Notes: generated by a model not told the origin, from the sequence alone. Positions 687-14,945 are shown, counted from the stretch's first letter. The stretch: 64,000 nt of DNA from Epithemia pelagica (GCA_946965045.2 OX337236.1:2852001-2916000); one strand, 5' to 3'. Numbers and translations: made by a program.

Positions 687-1765
687 GAACAACAACAAGC
701 GCCACGACCGAGTCACGCAATACTTCGACTACTACTACTACGACTCGTAGTACAAATCCTCAAGTGGGTGCCTGTCTCATTACACGAGGCGACAAGAGTC
801 GTCGAGCCTTGCACGAATGGCTCATTTACCACCGCTTGTTGGGCATTCATCACGTTTGGATTTATCTCAATGAACCATGGAATCTGACCCATGCCACACC
901 CACAACCACAGCATCATCCTCCTCCTCCTCCTCCTTGCCCAATCTCCCCTATGTCACGTATATACCCTACAATTACTGGTATCGCAATTTTGTACCATCT
1001 GACAATGGAATCCTGATTCGATGGCAAGTTCCCATGCAAATGACATGTCTCTGGAATGCCAAACGACTCGGTTTGGATTGGATCATGACGACCGATACCG
1101 ACGAATTTCTCGATGTCACCAATATTGTTCCCAAAGACCCATTGGACAAACCCCATCCGTCTGCCAACAACACCAAAACCGCCCAACAGGAGAACCAGCA
1201 GCACCATCCATTGCCAGGAGTATCCTCCAACGACACTACCAAAGCTGACGACAGCCATACGACTCACCATGAGTCACCAATACCGCCATTGCTTGAGTTC
1301 CTTGGCCGATACAATCCGCACCGTGTCGGTGCCTTGCAAATGATGAGTGTTCCCTACGGGCGTCATCGTCTTTTGGAACCCGAACCCAACAAACGCAACC
1401 AGTCATTATCGTCGTCGTTGCAAATGGATCAAGTGTGGCGGAATCGAAAATTGTGGCATACCAAATGGAATCGGCTCAAATTACTCTACAGTGTCCCCAA
1501 TGCCCTGGCCGTCAATGTCCATGCCTTGCTGGAATGTCACACGCGCCAACATGAAGCGTGTCCCATTCATCGATTGGATCCCACGAGTTCCATCTATTTG
1601 CGCCATTATCGACGGGGAGGCATGGCGACGACGGGAATCATGTTCAATCCCGATTTCAAACACTTGGTGGCCGATCGGCAATTGCCCCAACACTATCGGA
1701 CGGCCGTGTTGGAGGAATTGCACAAGACGACAATGACGACGGACAACCCACCAGTCGCATCGTAG
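29..1765 (+). CDS. Glycosyltransferase family 92 / DUF23-like protein
   Basis: 578-aa ORF with VGACLITR..LHEWLIYHRLLGIHHVWIYLNE and DWIMTTDTDEFL (DxD), typical of GT92/DUF23; poly-Thr spacers. The true 5' end may lie upstream of the window. Confidence 0.75.
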
Positions 1766-1912
1766 TCACCACCCACCACACGCACGCACACACATCAAGT
1801 GGTTTCTTTCGTGATGGACCATGCACAAACCAAAACAGGTTTCGTTGTGTGGTTAAAGTAGGATTACCTTGTTTATTCAGTATGTGCATTATCTATAGCG
1901 ATTCTCTCGAGA

Positions 1913-2674
1913 CTATATATACAGAGATTCTCGTTTCTCTTTTGTTCTTCTTGGCGGGAGGCTTGCTTGAGCAATCTGTGCGGCCCAAATCCGTGAGGGA
2001 CGGGAGATTTCTTGTGCCACCAATGCCATGGTGCAGGCACGTTGTTCGGCCGATGCATATGGATAGTCCTGATCTTCTTGAATGTCCAAGACGGCATGGA
2101 TCAATTCATCTCGTCGTGGTCTCTTGTCGAGTCGTAACCGGCGAATGGCCACCTTTTCCAATCCAATCCGGCCCGCATACGAGACTGAAAGCAACTCTCC
2201 AAGTACTTGACCATCCTGAGCGGACAAGACCGATTCTTGAGTGGCCTCGTTTTCTTCTTGGAGTGTCTTTCTTCGGGACATTGGTACTGCACAACAAGAT
2301 TGGTAGAGACGGTCTAGTGCTCCGCTGTACGAGTTTTTGTCTTTGCGGTTGCCTCGTTCCAAACGAATCACCATTTTGATGGCTTGTGTGTACTCATGTC
2401 GGAATTCTTGATAGTCTTGTGACGAGTACCATTTGTTCATATCACAGTCGTCTTGCTCTGGGACAATAACATGAGAATACGTGGTGGTGTGTTCGGCAAA
2501 CCGTACGCGACGATTCATTGTTGTTTGCTGCACAGTTTCAGTCTTTGAGAGGCTCGTGGGTTGCACGTAAAACGTAGAGGACGTCGATCCTTCTTCATCG
2601 GACAGAGGTGAAGCAATGGAGTACGGGTGGAACTGCGATATTCTGGATTGCTCGAGTTGTCCGATCATGATCAT
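1913..2674 (-). CDS. Diatom-type hypothetical protein (RRVRF...WYS...GLE family)
   Basis: 253-aa ORF with RRVRFAE, KWYSSQDYQEFR and RIGLEK motifs, a pattern common in diatom proteins of unknown function. Start codon uncertain. Confidence 0.6.
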   Translation of the reverse strand: MIMIGQLEQSRISQFHPYSIASPLSDEEGSTSSTFYVQPTSLSKTETVQQTTMNRRVRFAEHTTTYSHVIVPEQDDCDMNKWYSSQDYQEFRHEYTQAIKMVIRLERGNRKDKNSYSGALDRLYQSCCAVPMSRRKTLQEENEATQESVLSAQDGQVLGELLSVSYAGRIGLEKVAIRRLRLDKRPRRDELIHAVLDIQEDQDYPYASAEQRACTMALVAQEISRPSRIWAAQIAQASLPPRRTKEKRESLYI

Positions 2675-2880
2675 GGATTTTGTCTGTTGTTGTTTTGTTT
2701 AGTTGTGATTTTTGTGAGACGGCAATCATATTTTGGGTTTGGGATTTCGGATATAGTGGTTGCTGTCTGTGCTGATGCGGAGCATAATATGCCCGAGACC
2801 TTAAACTCCGAACAGCTCATATCCGACGACCGACTGCCTGAGTCAACAGTCAACAGGAGCAAGTAAAGAGTAAAGACAAA

Positions 2881-4134
2881 CATTCGCCATTAAATCCCCT
2901 CCATTTTGGTGAGGCGGCCAGACCAAATTCGGTCGCGTGTCCTGGACACGTGCTTGGAAGGGCTTGCTCTCAAATGGGTGGCTTTGCCAGCTCTCCAACT
3001 GCCTGCAAGCGGCCCTGCGTGGATGACGGTTGGTTGTTTCATAATGTCGGACAAGCAACAAGCACACAATCCTTTTCTCTTGCCAAAGCACATCGGATTA
3101 ATGGCATTCCAGGTGAGCTTGATCCATTGCGGATTGCCATGACAATTACATTGCTCATGCTCACTCACACTTGTCTCTTTTGCTTGCTCTGCTCATTGGA
3201 CGAGCGTCTGCTCATCTGCTGTGTCTCTGGCTCAGCAGCTAATTACTTGCCATTGTTCATTTCTGTCGAAATGAGTCCATAACTTTCATTGCATTCATCC
3301 ACAGACTATAAACCTTTTTTTCTTTATTCACTAGAAATAGAACTCATGTGCTAGCCATCTATAGAGTTAAGTGCCTTCTGTATTCGTGTTGTACATCTGT
3401 TTTCTGTTTTGAGCACGTCAATGACCCTCAGTTCCACCATGAACACACGACAGAGCAGCTCTTACACGCATCTACAGCTACGAATTGAATCATTCGCTGT
3501 ATGACTCTAGATCTAGGTGCTGATAATTGGAAAGTAGGGTGTGGAAGCAAAAACAACAACATGTTTGGTCGTTGAGAAATGATTGAGAATGATCTATCCT
3601 ACAGAAGACATAAAAGTAACCAACCAGCCAACAATCAAACAACAAAAGAATTGCAACAAGGGGAAGGGGATAGATATTCCACTTGACCACAAGCAGCTTA
3701 TACCGACTAGTCTACGCGTACAACATGAGACAAAACCAAAGGATTATGCATGAACCAAAGGAAAGATTGCAGCAGTGATGAGTAAGAAGAAAGAAAAGGA
3801 GAGAAGAAGATTAGAACTAAGCAGCAGTAGTTAGAAGTTAGAAGCGATTCCGCCCAGCATGATTCGTCCATGGTTCATACCTCATGTCATGTGCCTCGGT
3901 TTTGGGTTTTTGTGAGAGACGCGAACGAGAGGGTTGCCCAATTTTGTGAGGATTCGTCCTAAACAAGAAACCAAATCCGAGGAAGCTGGACGCAAGCCGA
4001 CCTTGATGTAACGGTGTTGGCAATTAGAGATACTTAGAGCTAACTGGAGCAGTGGCGGGCGACATTGAAAAAAGGATAGGGTTGGGGATTTGTCTGGCCG
4101 CCTCACCAAAATGGAGGGGATTTAATGGCGAATG
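2881..4134. mobile_element. Non-autonomous TIR DNA element (MITE-like, 1254 bp)
   Basis: Perfect 43-bp terminal inverted repeat: CATTCGCCATTAAATCCCCTCCATTTTGGTGAGGCGGCCAGAC at 2881-2923, reverse complement at 4092-4134. AAA on both flanks may be a 3-bp TSD. No transposase ORF inside. Confidence 0.8.
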
Positions 4135-4234
4135 AAATACTCACAATCGCACACAAAACACATCACCGGGAGCCGATAATATGACATAACGTTTGCATAT
4201 ATACTCAAATAACAAAAATAACTTGTCAAACTTC

Positions 4235-5160
4235 TAGAGCTGGGTCAAGCGTCAAGCGCTCAAGCGCTCAAGCGCTTGACTTCTCAAGCGCTTGAGGAGC
4301 TCCAGCACAGAAAGGGTGTTGCTTGAGAGCTCAAGCGCTCAAGCACCTAGACTAGAGGAAAGTGCCAAAACGCAGCAAACCATCATTCGTCTGCCCCTAA
4401 CAGCCTTTCTACAATGCCTGAGACATCTATTGATGATCACAATGAGTCATCATACCATCCAGATGATGAAAATTATGAGCAAGTGGCTGAAGAGGGCCCA
4501 ACAGATGACAATGATGATAGTGAGAAGAATAAATTGTCATCCATGGAAAAAGAATACGTAAGGCCTCCTACTATTGCCATTCACAAAGGCAAGGAAATAT
4601 GTGTTACAAAGATATCTCAAGATGCTGCTGATGGAGTTTGCGTCCCATTATTGGACAGGAAAACTGTTCATTGGCATTTGTAGCATGTTGGAGTGAGAAA
4701 AAATGGACGAAGTCTCTGACAAGCCTACTACACAACCTCCGCTAGCTAGACTCTAACAATTGAAAAGAGGAACGACTCATTATTAGACAAGAATCTCTCC
4801 ACAACTTCCCACTACGAGCTCTTCGTCTGTGCCCAGCAACGAACTAAGCTCACGCAATCAGAAGGCATTATTCTTGCAAGAAGAATCTACACCACGAGAT
4901 CGCACAAAGACAACGGAATGAAAAGTATCTTTTAAGAGTAACTTCGAAATAGATTTTCCATCACCTATCATGTACACAATAGATAGTATGACAAGTTACC
5001 ATGTCACTAGAGATGCTATGATGAGTCTATTGCCATAGTTTCCCGTGTTAGCACTGTTTGCTGCCGCTTGAGCGCTTGAGCGCTTGAATTTGGTCCTAGC
5101 TCAAGCGCTCAAGCGCTTGAGTTCTCCAGCAGAAAAAAGCTGTTGCTTGACACAGCTCTA
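4235..5160. mobile_element. hAT-superfamily non-autonomous element (926 bp)
   Basis: 16-bp TIR TAGAGCTG(G/T)GTCAAGC (15/16 match) and a perfect 8-bp TSD CAAACTTC (4227-4234 and 5161-5168). Clusters of TCAAGC/GCTTGA subterminal repeats at both ends. Confidence 0.92.
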
Positions 5161-7389
5161 CAAACTTCCCAACCATTTCAGTCCCATTTCCTCTAAAAGA
5201 CAACAGACAGTCAGAGATACTTACGAGTATTACTTATCCCTAACAGATAACAAAAGATAACAGCCTCCGCCGAACCTGACCCTCGGCCATCTATTCTCTA
5301 CGAGTATTCCATAATATGCGTATTGTAAAATTCCACCATCAACGAATTTTTCAGTACAGATTCCATATTATTTCGACATCAGATTGGATAAACAGCAAAG
5401 AGTGTGGATGTTAGTTTAGGTTCAGGGTTCAGGTTCTTTTCTATCCTAGGACTGGGAGTATTCTACTTCCCGCTCGCTAATGCGCGGGCTGGCGTGTCTT
5501 CGGACGGACTAATCTGCTTCCACTCGCACTCGGTCGCCGATACTTTCTACATCGGGGATCAGGGCATCAACGATAGGGAGCTCCTCTAGTTTTCTGTCGC
5601 CCACGATAAACACTGGTGGTGTATCTTTGGGTGAGCTGAACGAGTGTCTAGCTTGGAGTCCCAGTCGTCTTCTTTCTTGGTATGACATGGGCGGGATCGT
5701 ATCAATGATACTATCGCTCCTCATGTCCGTGCCCTGATCGCTTTCGTCATACGGAAAATAAAAAAACTACCTAGAGAAATTCACCTTTTCATTCTCTGAG
5801 TACTCCTAGCTAATTTTCGATGATTTTCTAGCTACGTAGATACCCTATACCCAATTCATGAATCTATATTGCATATTGAGTCACGTCCCTTTCATATCAA
5901 TACTCGTACATATTCCAATCACTTGAATTTCGCATTCGTAAAGGCCCAACCAGGATCAAGTACGAGTATATGCCGTTTTTCTGAGCATCCATCCACCAGC
6001 TTTGTACTTTGTATTCGTACTTATTACTTACTCCTATATCTTTTTGAATTTTGAATGAATTGACGATGAATGTTGAATGTCCAATGTCCAGCCCGCAGTG
6101 TCATAATCACCATAAGATCGTATTCGTAGCAACATAGCAAGTTATGTCCCATTTTTCCAAATTTCTGGTAAATGTAAGGGAGTTCTGCTTTTTTCACGTT
6201 CCAAAACTACTCTCCAGAGCTACAGGCTATTTTATTAATAAAATTTATTTCATTGTATATACTTAATTCACGCTAGAGATTAGTTTCTACATTGAATAAT
6301 ATTGTAACCACGATATTGCTTGCTTCCGAATTGTCAAATATTACTGCTGGAAGCTCGGGAAAGGATCGAAAGCAGCAGAACAATCTACACTTGCGACTCG
6401 AGCTTTTTTGTTTTCGAGAGAGTGCAAGACTATGAGAGAAGAGAAACAAAACCGGGAACCCAGCTGAGAAGAAGTATTTCCCTCAAATTGACTCACTATA
6501 TAGATCTTATCGATTATCGATGCGGGACACTTTTTGACTTTTGACGCTCTATCGTAAAAAGAGAGGAGCCGTCGTAGCTCTGGTTCGAGGTACGTCATTC
6601 ACAAGCAAATCTGAATCACATTGCTGGATCGAATACTCCTATATTGCAAATACGCACGATCGTGACTATATCCTCGGTAGTAGTAATTTGGCAAAACCCT
6701 CTTTCACAGCGTCACAAACACTTGGTTAGGCTTGGACGATCATCATCGCCTCTCTTCGTGCGTCAAAACAGCTTCGTTAGAAGCGTCTGAGAAACTAGAT
6801 GCGCATCTGTTGACTCATCACAGTCCACGAACAACCAAGTTCAGTCGAACGACGCTGATTCACACATCTCTCTCTATTCTTGCCTCATGACCCTGAGACC
6901 ATCCGTTCACGTTTGCCCAGTGAGATTCTAAATTGTGTTTGGATGAAAAAATAGTCCATTCTTCTCTTTTTGGTGCGAACAAGAGAATTCCACGTTCCCG
7001 ACGGAGAATCGAGGAGCGTCATGACTGCCCTGATTCGGCAAAATTCAGCATCTTGGTACGCACCTTTTTCGTTCTAGCCAAGAAGAACAACATCATCGTC
7101 ATCATTGGGGAGGAGAAGAACGTCTTTTGCAAATGAGTGTTTGGTGGCACGGTTCTCCTACCATCAAAGAGTACTGCTACTGAATACTAGAGTGCAGACT
7201 CAGGACATCGCATGGCTTCGCTTCGGCAAACATCACCATTCGTTGGTCCAAAGGAAGGATCAAACTCAGAGAGGTGGATTCTGACTCTCTCACGTCTTTT
7301 CAAGAAGAAACATGAATGCGCAGCAATGCGATCGACTCATCCATTCTTGCGCGTTCGATGGCAGGAACGACCAACTGATGTCATGGAAA

Positions 7390-7408
7390 CTTGTTAGAAG
7401 TTTTAACA
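7390..7408 (+). repeat. 5' LTR remnant (last 19 bp of U5)
   Basis: CTTGTTAGAAGTTTTAACA is identical to the 3' LTR end at 13550-13568. The sequence upstream does not match the LTR. Confidence 0.85.
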
Positions 7409-7422
7409 TATTCTCCATTGAA
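7409..7422 (+). promoter_or_regulatory. Primer-binding site, complementary to the element's own LTR
   Basis: TATTCTCCATTGAA directly abuts the LTR terminal CA. It does not start with TGG, and it is the exact reverse complement of TTCAATGGAGAATA at 13272-13285 and 13494-13507. Confidence 0.8.
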
Positions 7423-7465
7423 ATCATTACACTAAGTACCTCCGTTGTTGACGTGAAGTACTCTT

Positions 7466-8164
7466 ATGAGTGAAGAGGGCACAAGTGATCGCGTACAATC
7501 TTTATTATCGGAACTGGCCCAACTCACTATCGAACAAGAGGATCTCTTACACGAAGCGGAACAGCGCTACCAACAACGCTTTCGCACCAAGGAGGCGCAG
7601 CATCGCGAGGCCATCGCTGCACTGGAGCGACAACGAGAAATCGAAAGAGACAACGATTACGAGGAAACGGAGATTCGGAAACAGCTGATCTTCGAGGAGA
7701 TACAGGAAAAGCGACGCACGTTGCTAGACAAAATCAAGCGGGCTGAGCGGGGCCCATCAACCTGCGCGGCTACATACGCAGAGCACTCCGCTGAAGCGTA
7801 TCTTGTGGAACCGAACCACGAAAACCCGAACCTAGAAAACAATTCGGAAGAGAATCAAGATCTTCGCGCATCCCCAGTCGCTCTCGTTGACCTGAGCCGA
7901 GAAACACCGGACGGTGAAATCGAAACAGAAACAATCATCCCCGCTATTCCACCACAAAGAGGCGTACTCCCACGGTGGATTCCTATTGGAACTCGCGTTT
8001 GGGTATTGAATACTCTCAAGTTGAAGGAAACAGTGGGACGAACACATCTCCAAGGCACAGTGTCGCGCCACGGCACATTATATCACTTTATCAAGATTTG
8101 GAATCCCATCACCAAAGATACAGAAGAACACCGCCGCCATCGTGACAGCATTGCGATTGTTTAA
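7466..8164 (+). CDS. Accessory ORF of the copia element (coiled coil plus C-terminal SH3/KOW-like beta domain)
   Basis: 232-aa ORF between the PBS and gag-pol, ending 5 nt before the gag ATG. E/Q/R-rich heptads N-terminally; IGTRVWVLN..QGTVSR..FIKI..RHRDSIAIV C-terminally. The fold assignment is inference. Confidence 0.7.
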   Translation: MSEEGTSDRVQSLLSELAQLTIEQEDLLHEAEQRYQQRFRTKEAQHREAIAALERQREIERDNDYEETEIRKQLIFEEIQEKRRTLLDKIKRAERGPSTCAATYAEHSAEAYLVEPNHENPNLENNSEENQDLRASPVALVDLSRETPDGEIETETIIPAIPPQRGVLPRWIPIGTRVWVLNTLKLKETVGRTHLQGTVSRHGTLYHFIKIWNPITKDTEEHRRHRDSIAIV

Positions 8165-8169
8165 ACGAG

Positions 8170-11100
8170 ATGTCTCAACAAGACAACGCAAATCGTCCAG
8201 ACACGGTTGAGTCTAGCTCCCGGTCGAGTGGACAACGTCAAGGCAGAGGCGGACGAGGAAGAGGACGAGGATGGCAGAATCAGGCTCAACAATCCAACTC
8301 GCCTAGATTTCAAGGCCAAGAACCGTCGCTTAAAGAATGCATATTCGACTACAGTGAGGATCCGCAATCGAAGCGCTATTTACGAAACGTCGAGTTATTG
8401 ATCGGCTACGTCGGTAGTAATTTTGATCGACACAATCAAGAATTCCAACAAGCACTCGAAGCATTGGAACTACCCGACCCAGAAGAAGCAACAAAACCAA
8501 AAGACCCCACAGATATGATCCAAGTGGAAGAGTGGAAGATGGCGTACAAAGCACGCCAAGATCAAATGGTCCTCTACAAAAACTTTCGTGCAGCTCTATA
8601 CAGCTTGATTATGGGACAGTGCACTCCGCTACTCAAGGATAAGCTACAGGCCCACGAGACCTTTGGAGAGATCAAGAAGATGCGTGACGGTGTGGATCTC
8701 TTGAAACTTATCAAGCAAATCACATTCACCTTTGATTCCGGACGCATATTCACTCTTGTCGCCCGAGATAAGCTCAAGGAAGATTTCTATAGTCTGAGGC
8801 GACGAAATAATCAAAGCCTCCATTCATATTACGAGGTATTCCGAGCCAAAGTCAAGGTCATGAATGAAGCCGGGATTGTCCTGTACGATAAGGACATGTT
8901 GGAACGAGTGGCGAAGGAAAAGAAACACACAACACCTTCTTCCGACGACCACGAGGACGCCCAAAATCGTTGTATTGCCATTCGATTCATCCGATCTTGT
9001 GGCAACAAGGAGTACGAAGCACATTTGCAAAATATGTTCTTGGATGGACAGAATGTATACCCCAAGACGCTTGCCAATGCTCGTGCGATCCTGGACAATC
9101 GAATGACAGGAAAACCAAAGAACAATCCTGGTCAGAGCAGCGGTCAGCCCGACAACGCCACCGGTGTGGCGTATGTAACAAGTGGAGAGACGAGTTTGCC
9201 CGATTCCACCATGACAGGCCACTCCAATGCGACAACTGCAACAGGAGCACATGCAAGTGGCTCCCAAGCATCGACAACACAGAGTCGCTCAAATCGAACC
9301 AACTCACAAGCCGAGGGTAACAATGAATCCAATCGAGGTGTGCTAACCTCATCAAACAGGGGCTCAATCGTCAACTGCGACTCACCTGATTATGTTTTCT
9401 CTTCCTCTACCATGCAGGCTAGCATTCCCCCTCAATGGCTGTTACTGGACAATCAGTCCACCGTTGACATCATCAAAGATCCATCCTTATTAAAAAATAT
9501 TCACTCGTCTGAGACTCCCATCGTCATTCAGAGTCATGCCGGTCAGAGGACTCTTCAGTTGCGAGGACTCCTGCCTGGATATGGCATCGTATGGCATGAT
9601 CCTGAGGGTCCAGCCAACATCATCTCCCTAAACAACGCACACACAAGATTTCACATCAAATATGACAGCGACCGTGGAAATTCATTTGCCTTACATGACC
9701 GAGCCACTGGTAGGCTAAAACACAAGTTCAATCCAAGCCCAGAAGGTTTATTCTACCTGGATACATCGACGTTACAGAGTAGCTTCGTAACAACTGTTAG
9801 CGAAAACGAAGAATCATACTCCCCGGAAGAAATTCGTAGAGCCAAGCTGGCCAGATCACTCCTAGCGAAGATAGGAAGGCCTTCTACCAAGGATTATCTT
9901 CATATCCTAAGGCACAACCTACTACCAAACGCTAACATTACTACTGACGATGTACACAGGGCCGAGAAGATCTACGGACCAGATTTGGGAACGCTCAAAG
10001 GCAAGACAACGAGACGCAAGTCCCCATTTGTCGACACGTCCACGACAGTACCACCTCGTATTGCTGAGAAGCACAAGGATGTCACATTGACCATTGACGT
10101 TATGCACGTGAACAATATACCATTCCTTGTCACCACGTCAAGGAAAATACATTTCGGGACGATCGACGCCATACAATCAACCACTGACACCAATATCATA
10201 CAATCCCTGAAGAAGACTGTGGCAGTTTACCGACGTGGCGGGATTAGACCGAGAATTGTGTTGGCTGATGGTGCATTTACAAGTGATGATATGCAAGCCA
10301 GTCTCCAACTCCTCGGCATCACCATCAATCCCACTGCCAGGGATGAGCATGTAGGTGATGTGGAACGTTACATCAGGACTGTGAAGGAGAGGATGCGCTG
10401 TGTTTATAACACGCTTCCTTTCGATGCCCTACCGAAGGTCATGTTGATAGAACTGGCCAAATTTGCCACGTTTTGGTTAAACTGCTTCCCACATCACACC
10501 GGCATTTCCAAAACACAAAGTCCACGTCTACTCGTGACCGGAGAGCATGTCGATTTCAACAAACATTGTCGGTATGAATTTGGCCAATACGTGCAGTGCC
10601 ATGAGCAGCACGATAACACCATGGCCCCAAGAACCATCGGAGCTATCGCATTGAGGCCAACCGGTAACAGGCAAGGTAGTTATTACTTCCTTAGCCTCAC
10701 TAGCGGCAGAGTAATCACAAGGAATCACGCCACCGCTTTACCTATGCCAGCAGAAGTCATTCAACGAGTACATCAGTTGGCGCAAAGTCAAGAGATGCAA
10801 CCGGGACTAGCATTCGGCAATCGTGACAACAGAATCTTGTTCCTAGACGAGAACAATGAACTGTTTGATGATGATGACGAGTCCTATGAAGATGTACAGG
10901 ACATGGATGAGGATCTGCGGTATGACGATGATCTAGTTGAGAATGAATTAGCTGAAGATGACGTGCCTGATGTTGAAAATGTCATAAACGAGCCAGAGCC
11001 CAACCAGCCGTTGGACAATTTGGATCTTGAACCGTTGGAAATCCAAGGAGTGGGGGCAGAAGCCAATCTGCCTGACCCAGTAGACAATGAACAATATCAT

Positions 11101-13335
11101 GATGCGCACGAACAAGACAGTAACGATTCGACCTATGATGATGCTTTGGAGGATGTTGTGATGGATATGGATGCTGATGAGGATGATGAGGGAAGGGAGC
11201 TAGCCGGTGGAGTAGAGGAGGAGAACGAAGAAGAAGCATCTCTCACAGATGAGGACTTAGGGATGGATGTAAATCCTGAACAGGAGAACAACAACCAACC
11301 CGAAAATGAACCCCGATACAATTTACGACCGAATCGACAAAGAAGCTATGCCCACCGTTACGGACATTCTTATGCCGCAGTGGACAAGCTTCAGCGTGGA
11401 CGATACGATGGCTATTTGCGAGATGGAATCCTGTATTTGGTGTCAACGGAAATCAATATGGCCACACCACAAATGCCAATGAAAAAAGGCATCAAGTTGT
11501 TCGGTGATAAAGGCGTGGCGGCTGTGAAAGTGGAGATACAGCAGTTACACGACCGCGGTGTTCTACGGGCTGTTCATAAAACTGATCTAACTTGGAACCA
11601 AGTGCAAGAAGCGTTAGGATACTTGATGTTCCTAAAACGCAAGCGCTGTGGCAAAATCAAAGGAAGAGGCTGCGCTGACGGGAGAAAGCAAAGAGCTTAT
11701 ATTGACAAACCCGAATCGGCATCACCCACAGTTGCTACTGAATCCGTTTTCATCACTGCTGTGATTGACGCTCTAGAACGACGCGTGGTTGCAGTAGCTG
11801 ATATACCAGGGGCATTCATGCACTCCGACATGGACCCCGACGTATATATGCGACTAGATGGGTTGATGGCTGAGCTGTTGCTGGAAGTGGATTATGACAC
11901 CTACGCTCCTTTCTTGACCTATGAGAAGGGTCAACCGGTGATTTATGTGGAGATGCTAAAAGCTCTTTACGGCACGCTTCGTGCCGCTCGTTTGTTTTGG
12001 GAGAAGCTTACCGCCGTGCTCAAGAGTTGGGGATTTGTTATCAATCCATATGACTCGTGTGTTGCAAACAAACAAGTAAACGATCGACAGCTCACTGTGA
12101 CGTGGCATATTGACGATTTAAAAGTCTCGCACGTTGATGGCAAGGTAGTTCATCAATTTTTGGATGACCTACGAGCGGAGTTCGGACAGTTGAGCGAGAT
12201 CTCAGTATCTGAGGGTACTCGACACGATTACCTTGGCATGTTCCTCGACTATGGGGAAGATGGTGTGGTTCAAGTGGATATGAGATCGTATCTTGAGACC
12301 ATCCTACTTGACTTACCAAAAGAATGGATCGGTCGAGCCCGTAGTCCCGCAGCCAAACACCTTTATCATGTGAACCCAATGGCTCACAAGCTGGATGAAA
12401 CAAAATCAGACCGGTTCCACAGTGTGACCATGCAACTCGCTTACATGGCACAACGTGGTCGCCCTGATATACGGACTGCCGTAACTTTTCTCAGCACCCG
12501 TGTCATGGCTCCTGATGATGATGACTACCGCAAACTCGGACGGGTTCTGAAGTATTTACAATCCACACGCGATTTGATCCTGCGTCTAGAAGGTGACCCA
12601 ATGATGCATCTGTGGTGGTGGGTTGACGCATCTTATGCGACTCACCCCGATCTAAAAGGACACACTGGGGGTTTCATGACCATGGGAAAAGGAGCAGTGG
12701 TGACAGCTTCATCGAAACAAAAACTCGTGGCCCGTAGTTCAACTGAATGTGAACTCATTGGGGTACACGATGTACTCCCGTCTATCATCTGGACCAAGAA
12801 TTTCATACAGGCCCAAGGCCATGAGATCAAGGACGTAACCCTACATCAAGACAATCAGAGTAGTATTCTATTGGCGAAAAATGGACGGCTATCCAGTTCG
12901 AAGCGAACCAAACATATCAACCTTCGCTACTTTTATATCACAGACTGCATCAAGCGCAAAGAGATGGATATTGCATTCTGTCCGACTGAAGAGATGGTCG
13001 CCGATTTTTTTACCAAGCCATTACAAGGTCGCATCTTCTACCAATTGCGTGATATCATCATGAATGTACCATCGGATAGTAAATATCATTCCTCGGCACA
13101 AAGGAGTGTGTTGAGGATAGCAGAGCAACCGGTGAATATAGAGGACCAAGGTGCGACTGGTGCGACTGGCCATTCGCAAGATATAGGCCATTCGCAAGAT
13201 GCGGAATCATGGACATTGGTTTGTAGACGTGGCAAAAGCAACGAAAGAACGAACAAGAGAGCCAACGCTCATTCAATGGAGAATACGTATTTCGATAAGC
13301 CTATAAAGAGTTGCTTTTACGGCACGGCTTGTTAG
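8170..13335 (+). CDS. Gag-Pol polyprotein (Ty1/copia)
   Basis: Intact 1721-aa ORF. Protease WLLLDNQST; integrase TIDVMHVN / LADGAF / VERYIRTVKE; RT FLKRKRCGKIKGRGCADG, DIPGAF, LKALYG, WHIDDL; RNase H VDASYA..SSTECE..QDNQS..RTKHI..ADFFTKPL. Confidence 0.97.
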   Translation: MSQQDNANRPDTVESSSRSSGQRQGRGGRGRGRGWQNQAQQSNSPRFQGQEPSLKECIFDYSEDPQSKRYLRNVELLIGYVGSNFDRHNQEFQQALEALELPDPEEATKPKDPTDMIQVEEWKMAYKARQDQMVLYKNFRAALYSLIMGQCTPLLKDKLQAHETFGEIKKMRDGVDLLKLIKQITFTFDSGRIFTLVARDKLKEDFYSLRRRNNQSLHSYYEVFRAKVKVMNEAGIVLYDKDMLERVAKEKKHTTPSSDDHEDAQNRCIAIRFIRSCGNKEYEAHLQNMFLDGQNVYPKTLANARAILDNRMTGKPKNNPGQSSGQPDNATGVAYVTSGETSLPDSTMTGHSNATTATGAHASGSQASTTQSRSNRTNSQAEGNNESNRGVLTSSNRGSIVNCDSPDYVFSSSTMQASIPPQWLLLDNQSTVDIIKDPSLLKNIHSSETPIVIQSHAGQRTLQLRGLLPGYGIVWHDPEGPANIISLNNAHTRFHIKYDSDRGNSFALHDRATGRLKHKFNPSPEGLFYLDTSTLQSSFVTTVSENEESYSPEEIRRAKLARSLLAKIGRPSTKDYLHILRHNLLPNANITTDDVHRAEKIYGPDLGTLKGKTTRRKSPFVDTSTTVPPRIAEKHKDVTLTIDVMHVNNIPFLVTTSRKIHFGTIDAIQSTTDTNIIQSLKKTVAVYRRGGIRPRIVLADGAFTSDDMQASLQLLGITINPTARDEHVGDVERYIRTVKERMRCVYNTLPFDALPKVMLIELAKFATFWLNCFPHHTGISKTQSPRLLVTGEHVDFNKHCRYEFGQYVQCHEQHDNTMAPRTIGAIALRPTGNRQGSYYFLSLTSGRVITRNHATALPMPAEVIQRVHQLAQSQEMQPGLAFGNRDNRILFLDENNELFDDDDESYEDVQDMDEDLRYDDDLVENELAEDDVPDVENVINEPEPNQPLDNLDLEPLEIQGVGAEANLPDPVDNEQYHDAHEQDSNDSTYDDALEDVVMDMDADEDDEGRELAGGVEEENEEEASLTDEDLGMDVNPEQENNNQPENEPRYNLRPNRQRSYAHRYGHSYAAVDKLQRGRYDGYLRDGILYLVSTEINMATPQMPMKKGIKLFGDKGVAAVKVEIQQLHDRGVLRAVHKTDLTWNQVQEALGYLMFLKRKRCGKIKGRGCADGRKQRAYIDKPESASPTVATESVFITAVIDALERRVVAVADIPGAFMHSDMDPDVYMRLDGLMAELLLEVDYDTYAPFLTYEKGQPVIYVEMLKALYGTLRAARLFWEKLTAVLKSWGFVINPYDSCVANKQVNDRQLTVTWHIDDLKVSHVDGKVVHQFLDDLRAEFGQLSEISVSEGTRHDYLGMFLDYGEDGVVQVDMRSYLETILLDLPKEWIGRARSPAAKHLYHVNPMAHKLDETKSDRFHSVTMQLAYMAQRGRPDIRTAVTFLSTRVMAPDDDDYRKLGRVLKYLQSTRDLILRLEGDPMMHLWWWVDASYATHPDLKGHTGGFMTMGKGAVVTASSKQKLVARSSTECELIGVHDVLPSIIWTKNFIQAQGHEIKDVTLHQDNQSSILLAKNGRLSSSKRTKHINLRYFYITDCIKRKEMDIAFCPTEEMVADFFTKPLQGRIFYQLRDIIMNVPSDSKYHSSAQRSVLRIAEQPVNIEDQGATGATGHSQDIGHSQDAESWTLVCRRGKSNERTNKRANAHSMENTYFDKPIKSCFYGTAC
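13100..13108 (+). promoter_or_regulatory. Polypurine tract
   Basis: AAAGGAGTG immediately before TGTTG, within the usual copia SVL-coding junction. Confidence 0.65.
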
Positions 13336-13345
13336 AAGTTTTAAC
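13109..13345 (+). repeat. 3' LTR, copy 1 (237 bp, terminal A missing)
   Basis: Starts TGTTGAGG after the PPT and ends TTTTAAC. Contains internal direct repeats GGTGCGACT x2 and GGCCATTCGCAAGAT x2. Confidence 0.85.
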
Positions 13346-13350
13346 TGCTA

Positions 13351-13568
13351 CCGGTGAATATAGAGGACCAAGGTGCGACTGGTGCGACTGGCCATTCGCA
13401 AGATATAGGCCATTCGCAAGATGCGGAATCATGGACATTGGTTTGTAGACGTGGCAAAAGCAACGAAAGAACGAACAAGAGAGCCAACGCTCATTCAATG
13501 GAGAATACGTATTTCGATAAGCCTATAAAGAGTTGCTTTTACGGCACGGCTTGTTAGAAGTTTTAACA
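13351..13568 (+). repeat. 3' LTR, copy 2 (lacks the first 20 bp)
   Basis: 13351-13567 repeats 13129-13345 with a 222-bp period, separated by TGCTA. Ends in AACA followed by the TSD. Confidence 0.9.
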
Positions 13569-14945
13569 TGGAACATGCGCACATGCAGGGACTGGACCTT
13601 TATGCATCCATCACTGGCCCTTCATGATTTGCCCCGCATACCTTACTCAAGGTGAAGGAGGGTGGACTCGTTTTTCAGTGCGGAAGGATCAAGGTGGATT
13701 CTGACTCTATGATTCGCACGACGAAGAGGTGATGTCATTTCGAATGATTCATCCTTTCGTAATACGTACACGGCCAACGCTGTCAGAACTCTTGCTCTCC
13801 CTCTCAACGACCAACGGATGTCATTTGACAGGATGATGATTGTGTGCGAACTTTTGTTGATCTCTGCTCCAGAGGAACATTTGATCTTGGTTGGTAATGG
13901 GGCCGCCATGATCCAGCGACACTGACCTTGCATGCAGAAGAAGGAAGGCTGACTTTTCATTGCGGTAATCTCTGACTCTCTCTAGAGTACTACTACGAAA
14001 CGAAGATTCCAGTCCAAATCCATTCATCCGGTCTTTGGGAAACGCACGTCCCACACGGTGCGCCGCCCTTCCATGGACGCTTCTTTGGTGGACCAAGCTT
14101 CAGCTCTGCCACTCCAAAGAGTGGTGAGTGTCAGGGATCCATGGTGTTCCACTGGAAAGAGATACGACCGTCTGAATCTCTGGTAGAGAGCATATTTCGG
14201 GACTCGATTGCAACGCATCTTCACCCTGATCTTGTATTTGTGTATGTGTCTATCAAATCTCGTCGACTGTCAGGCCCTTGTACAACCGAGTGACAAGCGT
14301 TCCCGTATCCAGTATCATTTCGAATGAAACGACTTCCAAGTCCAATTGCGGTGGCCGTATCGAACTGCTTGAATTCGTATTCCTGGCCTTTTCATTGGAC
14401 GCAAAACACGGCTTCATTTCTTCCATACCCAAAATTGGGTCCATTATAATATCTAGGTCACCAACAAAAACAAATGACCACCAGCAAGCGCAAGACGAAG
14501 GGTCTGACTGCTGTCCACTTCAGAAGGGAGGTAATTATTTGATTCACTGGTATTCTTGCATCTTGACTGTCCCCATTGAAGTCTCGTCCTTTTTCTGATT
14601 CCCGTTGTCATTGTGACAAACTTGTAAAAATTCGATAAAATTTTACGATCGAATGTATAATTTTTTATATCAAAAGTTCTCTAGAAAGAGATACGGATCG
14701 AGAGAGACGCCACGCGCGGTCATGTGGCCGTTTTGGTCTTGATCCACATATCTTGGTCTTGATACGCCGGCGGGACTCGTTTTTTCGTACGCAAACTTTT
14801 GTGCTCATGTTTTGAGAGTTTTCAACGGTTCCGTTCAACGGTTCTGTCGTTCCATTTGCAGGCATCTCTCTTTTTTGTGTGCCATTCTTTTTTGGTGAAG
14901 ACTCGCGGTTTGCAATCCATCCACTTGAAACCAAGAAACAAGAGA

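Follow-up and report, generated by a model that had tools for sequence, protein, structure and literature searches.

The stretch of DNA analysed here, the window, comprises 64,000 nucleotides from Epithemia pelagica (GCA_946965045.2 OX337236.1:2852001-2916000). The region 7409-13346 is, judged by its sequence, part of a Ty1/copia long terminal repeat (LTR) retrotransposon of a diatom-type lineage, an assignment that follows from the RVT_2 type of its reverse transcriptase (RT), the TG..CA LTRs and the 5-bp target-site duplications. Directly behind the LTR the element carries a 14-nt primer binding site (PBS) that is complementary to a segment of its own LTR, and the same relation is found, with other sequences, in related elements inside and outside this genome. 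The element is therefore a probable case of self-primed reverse transcription.

The copy in the window is defective, being without the 5' promoter and the repeat (R) region and having a duplicated 3' LTR. The LTR boundaries were taken from sibling copies, where the repeat starts with TGTTGAGG, ends with AACA and is 238 nt long in the closest subfamily. The features are the following, with the basis for each given last.

7384..7388, no strand: possible target-site duplication TGGAA, left; one A separates the pentamer from the LTR remnant
7390..7408, + strand: 5' LTR remnant, the last 19 nt of the unique 5' region (U5), ending in CA; direct repeat, siblings having a full 238-nt 5' LTR at this place
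7409..7422, + strand: PBS, 14 nt, pairing with a segment of the element's own LTR; kept or co-varying in all relatives
7466..8164, + strand: open reading frame 1 (ORF1), 232 amino acids, an extra upstream gene; reading of the frame, no Pfam match
8170..13335, + strand: ORF2, gag-pol polyprotein of 1721 amino acids; Pfam RVT_2 and motifs read from the translation
13100..13108, + strand: polypurine-tract-like AAAGGAG(TG), adjoining the 3' LTR; conservation in relatives
13109..13346, + strand: 3' LTR copy 1, 238 nt, the last base being T and not A where copy 2 joins; boundaries from sibling LTR pairs and duplications
13268..13271, + strand: initiator-like CTCA, adjoining the primer segment; TCA invariant in an alignment of 15 own-genome families (columns 2-4)
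13272..13285, + strand: predicted self-primer, 14 nt (the first of R, or +2 to +15); complementarity to the PBS
13286..13345, + strand: rest of R-U5, predicted hairpin arms around the conserved apical motif GTTGCYTKTACRGCAC; folding and flank-swap test
13347..13568, + strand: second LTR copy in tandem, 5'-truncated (LTR positions 17-238); direct repeat with a 222-nt period, 220/221 identical
13569..13573, no strand: possible target-site duplication TGGAA, right; the pentamer adjoins the end of the last LTR

Complementarity between the primer binding site and the LTR

Read as its reverse complement, the PBS at 7409-7422 (TATTCTCCATTGAA) is identical to 13272-13285, and also to 13494-13507 because the partial tandem duplication of the 3' LTR has given the second LTR copy (13347-13568) a primer segment of its own. 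Pairing ends at both borders of these 14 nt. Nothing separates the PBS from the terminal CA of the LTR, and the primer segment begins with the base that follows CTCA (13268-13271). A preliminary description of this DNA had pointed out the 14-nt complement, and on re-reading the window all 14 of the 14 positions pair. It had also put the probability of such a match at roughly 1e-6; our own arithmetic, about 225 x 4^-14 for finding a 14-mer complement at any place in an LTR of 238 nt, gives 8e-7, in agreement with that figure. Its caveat that this copy has lost the 5' R region is correct, as only 19 nt of the 5' LTR are left (7390-7408). It makes no mention of the second LTR copy behind the 3' LTR.

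A search with the LTR in the 60.5-Mb genome identified 41 places, mostly arranged in pairs about 5.9 kb apart. The LTRs read TGTTG...AACA, and a perfect 5-bp target-site duplication surrounds eight of nine sibling pairs. All 14 loci with a 5' LTR display a perfect 14-nt complement between the PBS and a segment lying 74-75 nt upstream of where the LTR ends, while the control flanks behind 3' LTRs (n=14) never exceed 7 nt. In a sister family, whose LTRs are about 82% identical, the PBS reads TAATCTCCTTAGAA instead and the LTR segment matches it, which amounts to three compensatory double changes.

More distant relatives were found by searching the genome with the RT, which listed more than 100 related elements of 100% down to 41% identity. 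Twenty of these, with RT identities of 65-86%, were fetched for the pairing test, and the clades at 41-62% were left out. LTR pairs that are 97-100% identical are present in 19 of the 20, and the complementarity is 14/14 in 18 of these and 13/14 in one. The edges of the match are constant in these elements, with ..AACA| on the PBS side and CTCA| on the primer side. Counted over the full 5' ends of related elements in the genome, 32 of 33 have a perfect 14-nt match, the last one having 13/14. They represent eight distinct primer/PBS pairs, with the primer sequences TTCAATGGAGAATA, TTCTAAGGAGATTA, TTCAATGGAGTTTA, TTCTAAGGAGAATA, TTCTATTGGAAATA, TTCGATGAGTAAAA, TTCTTTTTAAAATA and TTCTATCAACAATA. 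LTR pairs that are 99-100% identical, together with perfect 5-bp duplications, mean that elements with such a PBS have transposed recently.

Elements outside this genome were reached through homologous polyproteins in JGI metagenome contigs, in Logan contigs of four run sets and in the ENA assembly ERZ25042306. Nine external elements each have a private pair of 13-17 nt at the same place, with the following lengths.

JGI metagenome contigs: L052, 13 nt perfect, or 15 nt with one G-U; L053, 14 nt
Logan elements (four): L054-56, 14 nt; L057-58, 14 nt; L059, 14 nt; L060, 14 nt
ENA assembly ERZ25042306: L061, 17 nt; L062, 14 nt; L063, 15 nt

Neither the host flank of L062 nor the leader DNA of L053 had a match when searched in this genome, and at least these two sources are thus other organisms. 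With the eight pairs from this genome, the number of distinct primer/PBS pairs comes to 17. The primer is preceded by CA or TCA in 15 of them, the external L057 and L063 lacking the CA.

The helix was evaluated in the alignment of 15 own-genome families, where columns 5-18 pair with columns 84-97. Every one of the 210 helix cells is Watson-Crick (210/210, 100%), with no G-U pair among the 15 families. Ten of the 14 pairs have changed on both sides (30 cells), and one-sided changes are not found. None of 500 column shuffles reached any of these measures, and sliding the partner by 1-3 columns lowers the pairing to 39-53%. RNAalifold predicts the same primer:PBS helix. Many of the changes are flips between AU and UA without a wobble intermediate. 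The lack of G-U and the AU/UA flips are what is expected where one strand is copied from the other, and not merely selected to pair with it. Covariation of PBS and LTR among siblings had been proposed in the preliminary description as a way of examining its reading, and compensatory changes are now found across the 17 distinct pairs. The complementarity, its exact place at the LTR edge, its compensatory evolution and the recent activity of the elements that carry it are direct observations.

The rearranged state of the window copy, with its truncated 5' LTR and tandem 3' LTR, could suggest that the match is due to chance or to an artefact of the assembly. Such a match is expected at about 1e-6 per element, yet the pattern recurs with different sequences in 33 own-genome 5' ends and nine external elements, and independent DNA sequencing runs contain a sibling 5' LTR-PBS junction. 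This explanation, to which we give practically no weight, is already refuted by the comparative data.

The PBSs are AU-rich and differ between the families, and none of those belonging to these elements begins with TGG. The exact family-A 14-mer has 32 matches in the genome, all of them in the LTR or PBS of these elements, and a comparison of coordinates placed none of the listed matches with at most one mismatch within the 63 best-scoring tRNA genes. In the window ARAGORN detected no tRNA, and an Rfam search of 6500-14500 gave no match.

The pairing of LTR and PBS might still be real while serving packaging, dimerisation, cyclisation or translational control, with a host RNA such as a tRNA fragment acting as primer. 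Ty1 RNA uses long-range 5'-3' pairings. Furthermore, Drosophila copia, Ty5 and several plant lineages are primed by half-tRNAs or by internal parts of a tRNA, with no TGG at the start (PMC6317226), and the tRNA comparison made here covered part of the tRNA set of the genome. Against this, seventeen unrelated AU-rich PBSs would need seventeen different host primers, and the duplex always begins at the base after the LTR CA, where the 3' end of a primer must sit. Strictly Watson-Crick pairs, with flips between AU and UA but without G-U, speak for templating and not for structural selection. In addition, the family-A primer has no exact copy outside the elements, and the listed matches with up to one mismatch miss the 63 best tRNA genes. 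We consider another role of the pairing, with priming by a host RNA, quite unlikely.

Folding of R-U5 and the proposed priming mechanism

Each family is predicted to fold into the 14-bp primer:PBS helix, a long irregular stem and a nearly invariant apical motif, GTTGCYTKTACRGCAC. The stems named in the preliminary description (13287-88/13344-45, 13289-93/13335-39 and 13294-301/13326-33) can all be read in the sequence, and ViennaRNA folding yields them for the siblings as well. The base after the primer segment is mostly an unpaired C that faces the terminal A of the LTR, and the C-A mismatch described earlier, with a C opposite the LTR terminal A, is likewise present in the window. To assess the fold at the family level, the left arm from each of eight distinct families was paired with its own or with a swapped right arm, and the duplex energies were summed. 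Own arms gave -78.7 kcal/mol and swapped arms a mean of -49.6 (standard deviation 5.8, minimum -70.7), and none of 14,833 derangements was as low. Own arms thus pair far better than swapped ones, which indicates that the R-U5 arms co-evolve and supports the earlier claim that R-U5 folds back. The long R-U5 stem was not recovered in the MAFFT/RNAalifold alignment.

The reading that we consider likely is that a clade of diatom Ty1/copia elements uses self-priming of the Tf1 kind, with the PBS being re-copied from the primer in each cycle. Transcription would set out from the conserved TCA in the LTR or from a base beside it, and the RNA would begin with the 14-nt segment. The R-U5 hairpin would then bring the first 14 nt onto the 14-nt PBS located directly after the terminal CA of the LTR. 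By analogy with the RNase H of Tf1, the RNA would be cut after base 14, and the 3' end of the resulting short RNA would prime minus-strand strong-stop DNA from the last base of U5. If the primer stays attached, plus-strand strong-stop synthesis would copy it and rewrite the PBS as the exact complement of the RNA 5' end. A change in the LTR segment would in this manner reach both new LTRs via the 3' copy of R, and the PBS one cycle later via the primer. From the standard retroviral strand-transfer model and from Tf1 it may be deduced that a PBS re-copied from the primer should co-vary in a strictly Watson-Crick manner. The transcription start, the cut, the retention of the primer and the re-templating of the PBS are the steps that we infer.

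The start site may be approached through published stramenopile initiator motifs, which fit a primer segment starting right after an invariant TCA. The Inr-like motif of Phaeodactylum, TCAH(+1)W (PMC4686930), would place +1 on the first paired base, so that pairing would, as in Tf1, run from +1 to +14. With the initiator of oomycetes, YCA(+1)YTYY (PMC3599244), +1 would be the A at 13271. The latter was the choice of the preliminary description, with pairing from +2 to +15, and it is a guess. Contig ends were considered as a proxy for the transcription start and rejected, as the Logan and JGI contigs may end anywhere in the LTR cycle; the L053 contig starts 1 nt inside the primer and the L052 contig about 30 nt further on.

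Several observations weigh against the self-priming proposed here, or at least against its details. The A before the duplex is unpaired in every family. Transcription from that A would give a primer with a 1-nt overhang, and the constant lack of pairing favours either +1 on the first paired base or a cap-proximal base that is not copied. The start within the LTR is a prediction, as the sequencing runs found to hold the element are three from one study, none of them recorded as RNA; aligned with a sibling 5' end, they behave as DNA contigs and give no starts. In two families the complementarity can extend one base into the LTR to give 15 bp, which means that the end of the duplex does not alone define the cut. 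Taken alone, the inner R-U5 hairpin has unremarkable energies (z from -2.0 to +0.6). The tRNA test compared coordinates, and only those of the 63 best tRNA genes. Finally, the one copy from a named diatom, Mayamaea (L051 2379-7574, GCA_027923505.1), has LTRs that are 100% identical and a complementarity of only 7/14. It was left out of the supporting count. Its PBS matches the LTR segment over the first 7 nt and then continues into unrelated sequence, and its polyprotein is shorter (1477 amino acids); it may have arisen by internal deletion or by recombination.

The primer could also be encoded by the element without being the capped 5' end acting in cis. It might be supplied by the U3/R-border copy in the 3' LTR or by the other RNA of a dimer, or be processed out of a longer leader whose start lies upstream of TCA. 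The same 14 nt are found in both LTRs, and the genomic RNA could carry two copies. That the start is predicted only, that the A before the segment is never paired and that L057 and L063 have no CA before the primer are all compatible with such a source. On the other hand, in 15 of the 17 pairs the complementarity has its 5' limit at an initiator-like CA or TCA, which is expected if plus-strand synthesis runs to the 5' end of the RNA, and the co-varying R-U5 hairpin puts the 5' copy onto the PBS. A primer of this origin is thus unlikely.

Coding capacity and the state of the window copy

ORF2 encodes an RT of the Pfam family RVT_2 (PF07727) at residues 1159-1379 (E 1.4e-13). According to motifs read from the translation, an integrase-like D..D..E region at about 640-735 with a GDVERYIRTVKER motif precedes the RT, and copia-like RNase H motifs follow at about 1480-1600. 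When pieces of ORF2 and ORF1 were searched against Pfam, RVT_2 was the only match, and no integrase (rve) or protease was found even at E<=1. The catalytic motifs are divergent; the RT has HIDD rather than YxDD, and a possible protease site reads LLDNQST rather than D(S/T)G. The translation contains neither a CCHC knuckle nor the zinc-finger cysteines of an integrase. A homology search with ORF2 gave 653 homologues, and PF07727 is present in 120/120 among those listed; the full-length ones are of 1500-1800 amino acids. Among homologues with a named source, the best belongs to Mayamaea pseudoterrestris, a diatom, with 57% RT identity. The polyprotein frame is open through nearly the whole 3' LTR (13109-13335), with the stop 11 nt before the LTR end, and in the relatives it ends at varying points inside or upstream of the LTR. 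The sequence (A/C)A(A/G)GGAGTG upstream of TGTTG is kept across all relatives, the external ones included.

ORF1, of about 210-280 amino acids, lies between the PBS and the polyprotein, and each of the 19 related elements retrieved from the genome has it in open, alignable form. It is absent in the external relatives, where the polyprotein begins just after the PBS. The protein has an N-terminal part resembling a coiled coil and a conserved C-terminal motif, IGxxVWVLNxLKL...WNP...EEHRR. The frame of ORF1 relative to ORF2 is variable, and its stop abuts or overlaps the start of ORF2. One own-genome copy (L041, C17) displays an internal duplication of about 40 amino acids in ORF1 when compared with its sister copy L039.

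The external sequence L061 (1-9689) contains its self-priming-type element (1471-7284) nested within a copia-type element on the opposite strand. This outer element carries the Pfam domains gag_pre-integrs and RVT_2 and thus belongs to a different, more conventional copia clade in the same organism.

At the tandem 3' LTR of the window copy (window 13125-13568), the terminal A of copy 1 has been replaced (..TTTTAAC-TGCT-ACCGG..), and copy 2 lacks the first 16 nt. A microhomology deletion and a permuted or simple 2-LTR circle were considered as origins of the truncated 5' LTR and the tandem 3' LTR, and neither fits. The two TGGAA pentamers are a single 5-nt match with an offset of 1 nt, and are as such weak evidence for a target-site duplication. 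If they do represent one, the left end may have been truncated already at integration and not deleted later. The host DNA on the two sides, 7150-7384 and 13600-13824, is about 71% similar overall and includes identical blocks, for instance AGGTGGATTCTGACTCT and AACGACCAAC(T/G)GATGTCAT. This likeness is probably due to locally repeated host sequence.

Relation to known priming systems and significance

Self-priming is established for Tf1 and Tf2 and has been proposed for other Tf1/sushi elements. The diatom elements resemble Tf1 and Tf2 of Schizosaccharomyces pombe in that the PBS adjoins the LTR and complements the start of the element's own RNA, as predicted here, in that an R-U5 structure joins the two, and in the lack of tRNA complementarity. 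According to the summary in PMC7175516, Tf1 RNA pairs through its first 11 bases, is cut by RNase H between bases 11 and 12 and depends on a U5-IR-like stem-loop for priming; the co-evolving R-U5 arms found here parallel this stem-loop. The duplex is 14 nt long here (13-17 nt in relatives) while that of Tf1 is 11 nt, and the start, the cut and the retention of the primer are predicted steps in the diatom elements. The Tf1/sushi elements are Ty3/gypsy chromoviruses, whose polyprotein has the RT ahead of the integrase and a chromodomain, whereas the elements described here have an RVT_2 RT, an integrase-like region before the RT and a 5-bp duplication. Judged from these traits, the element is likely to work like Tf1 but lies outside the Tf1/sushi phylogenetic family.

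In the preliminary description, self-priming was thought not to have been described for Ty1/copia. This does not hold: there is a proposal of self-priming for the plant Ty1/copia elements Houba and Osr-1, and a prediction of it for the TAR lineage as a whole (Neumann et al. 2019, PMC6317226, citing Capy 2005). Of the self-priming reading put forward in that description, the pairing of an element-encoded primer with the PBS is strongly supported by the 17 compensatory pairs, while the novelty within Ty1/copia falls away. TAR and the present elements share the superfamily and the predicted tRNA-independent self-priming. They differ in their hosts, land plants as opposed to organisms of the diatom type, and in the evidence: for TAR the accessible text gives a classification of the PBS element by element without a covariation analysis, while 17 compensatory pairs are available here.

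Other Ty1/copia elements that have a PBS adjoining the LTR and not starting with TGG are Drosophila copia, yeast Ty5 and the plant elements Osser, Bryco and Bianca. Their PBS matches tRNA-iMet or tRNA-Ile internally and does not vary from family to family (PMC6317226), while the PBS here is family-specific and matches the element's own LTR. The fungal GalEa copia elements, which have a 'Conserved Hairpin Site', are also without a tRNA PBS and have a conserved structure at the PBS position. For GalEa, LTR complementarity of the Tf1 type was sought by the authors and none was found (PMC5445492), whereas it is the defining feature here.

The CoDi elements of diatoms, described in 2009, belong to Ty1/copia and measure 5-8 kb, their LTRs being of the TG..CA type and 150-850 bp long, and many of the elements are without the CCHC knuckle (PMC2806351). 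The present elements are likewise Ty1/copia of the diatom type, with the nearest named homologue coming from Mayamaea pseudoterrestris. The founding paper on CoDi is silent on the PBS and on priming (PMC2806351), and a full-text search of open-access papers for self-priming together with diatoms or CoDi gave no such description. What is described here thus seems to be a mechanism of a known kind in a host group where it is unreported. A more far-reaching proposal, which we hold tentatively and at somewhat less than an even chance, is that self-priming is ancestral and general in a large diatom-wide Ty1/copia lineage, independent of Tf1/sushi and of plant TAR, with each family having a private, drifting primer/PBS 'address'.

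If that is true, the private address could keep the families from priming on one another. The elements would be independent of host tRNAs, and invisible both to silencing based on tRNA fragments and to annotation tools that rely on a tRNA-type PBS. Elements that are not primed by tRNA may escape host defences acting via tRNA-derived fragments. Pipelines for genome annotation in which PBSs are sought by their complementarity to tRNA will misjudge these elements, a large part of the diatom repeat content. The many primer/PBS pairs also constitute a natural series of variants for studying how an RNA duplex is recognised and cut by RT and RNase H. With self-priming as the likely reading, self-primed reverse transcription would be extended to the Ty1/copia elements of stramenopiles of the diatom type, on comparative evidence that is unusually clean in combining many families, strict Watson-Crick pairing and recent activity.

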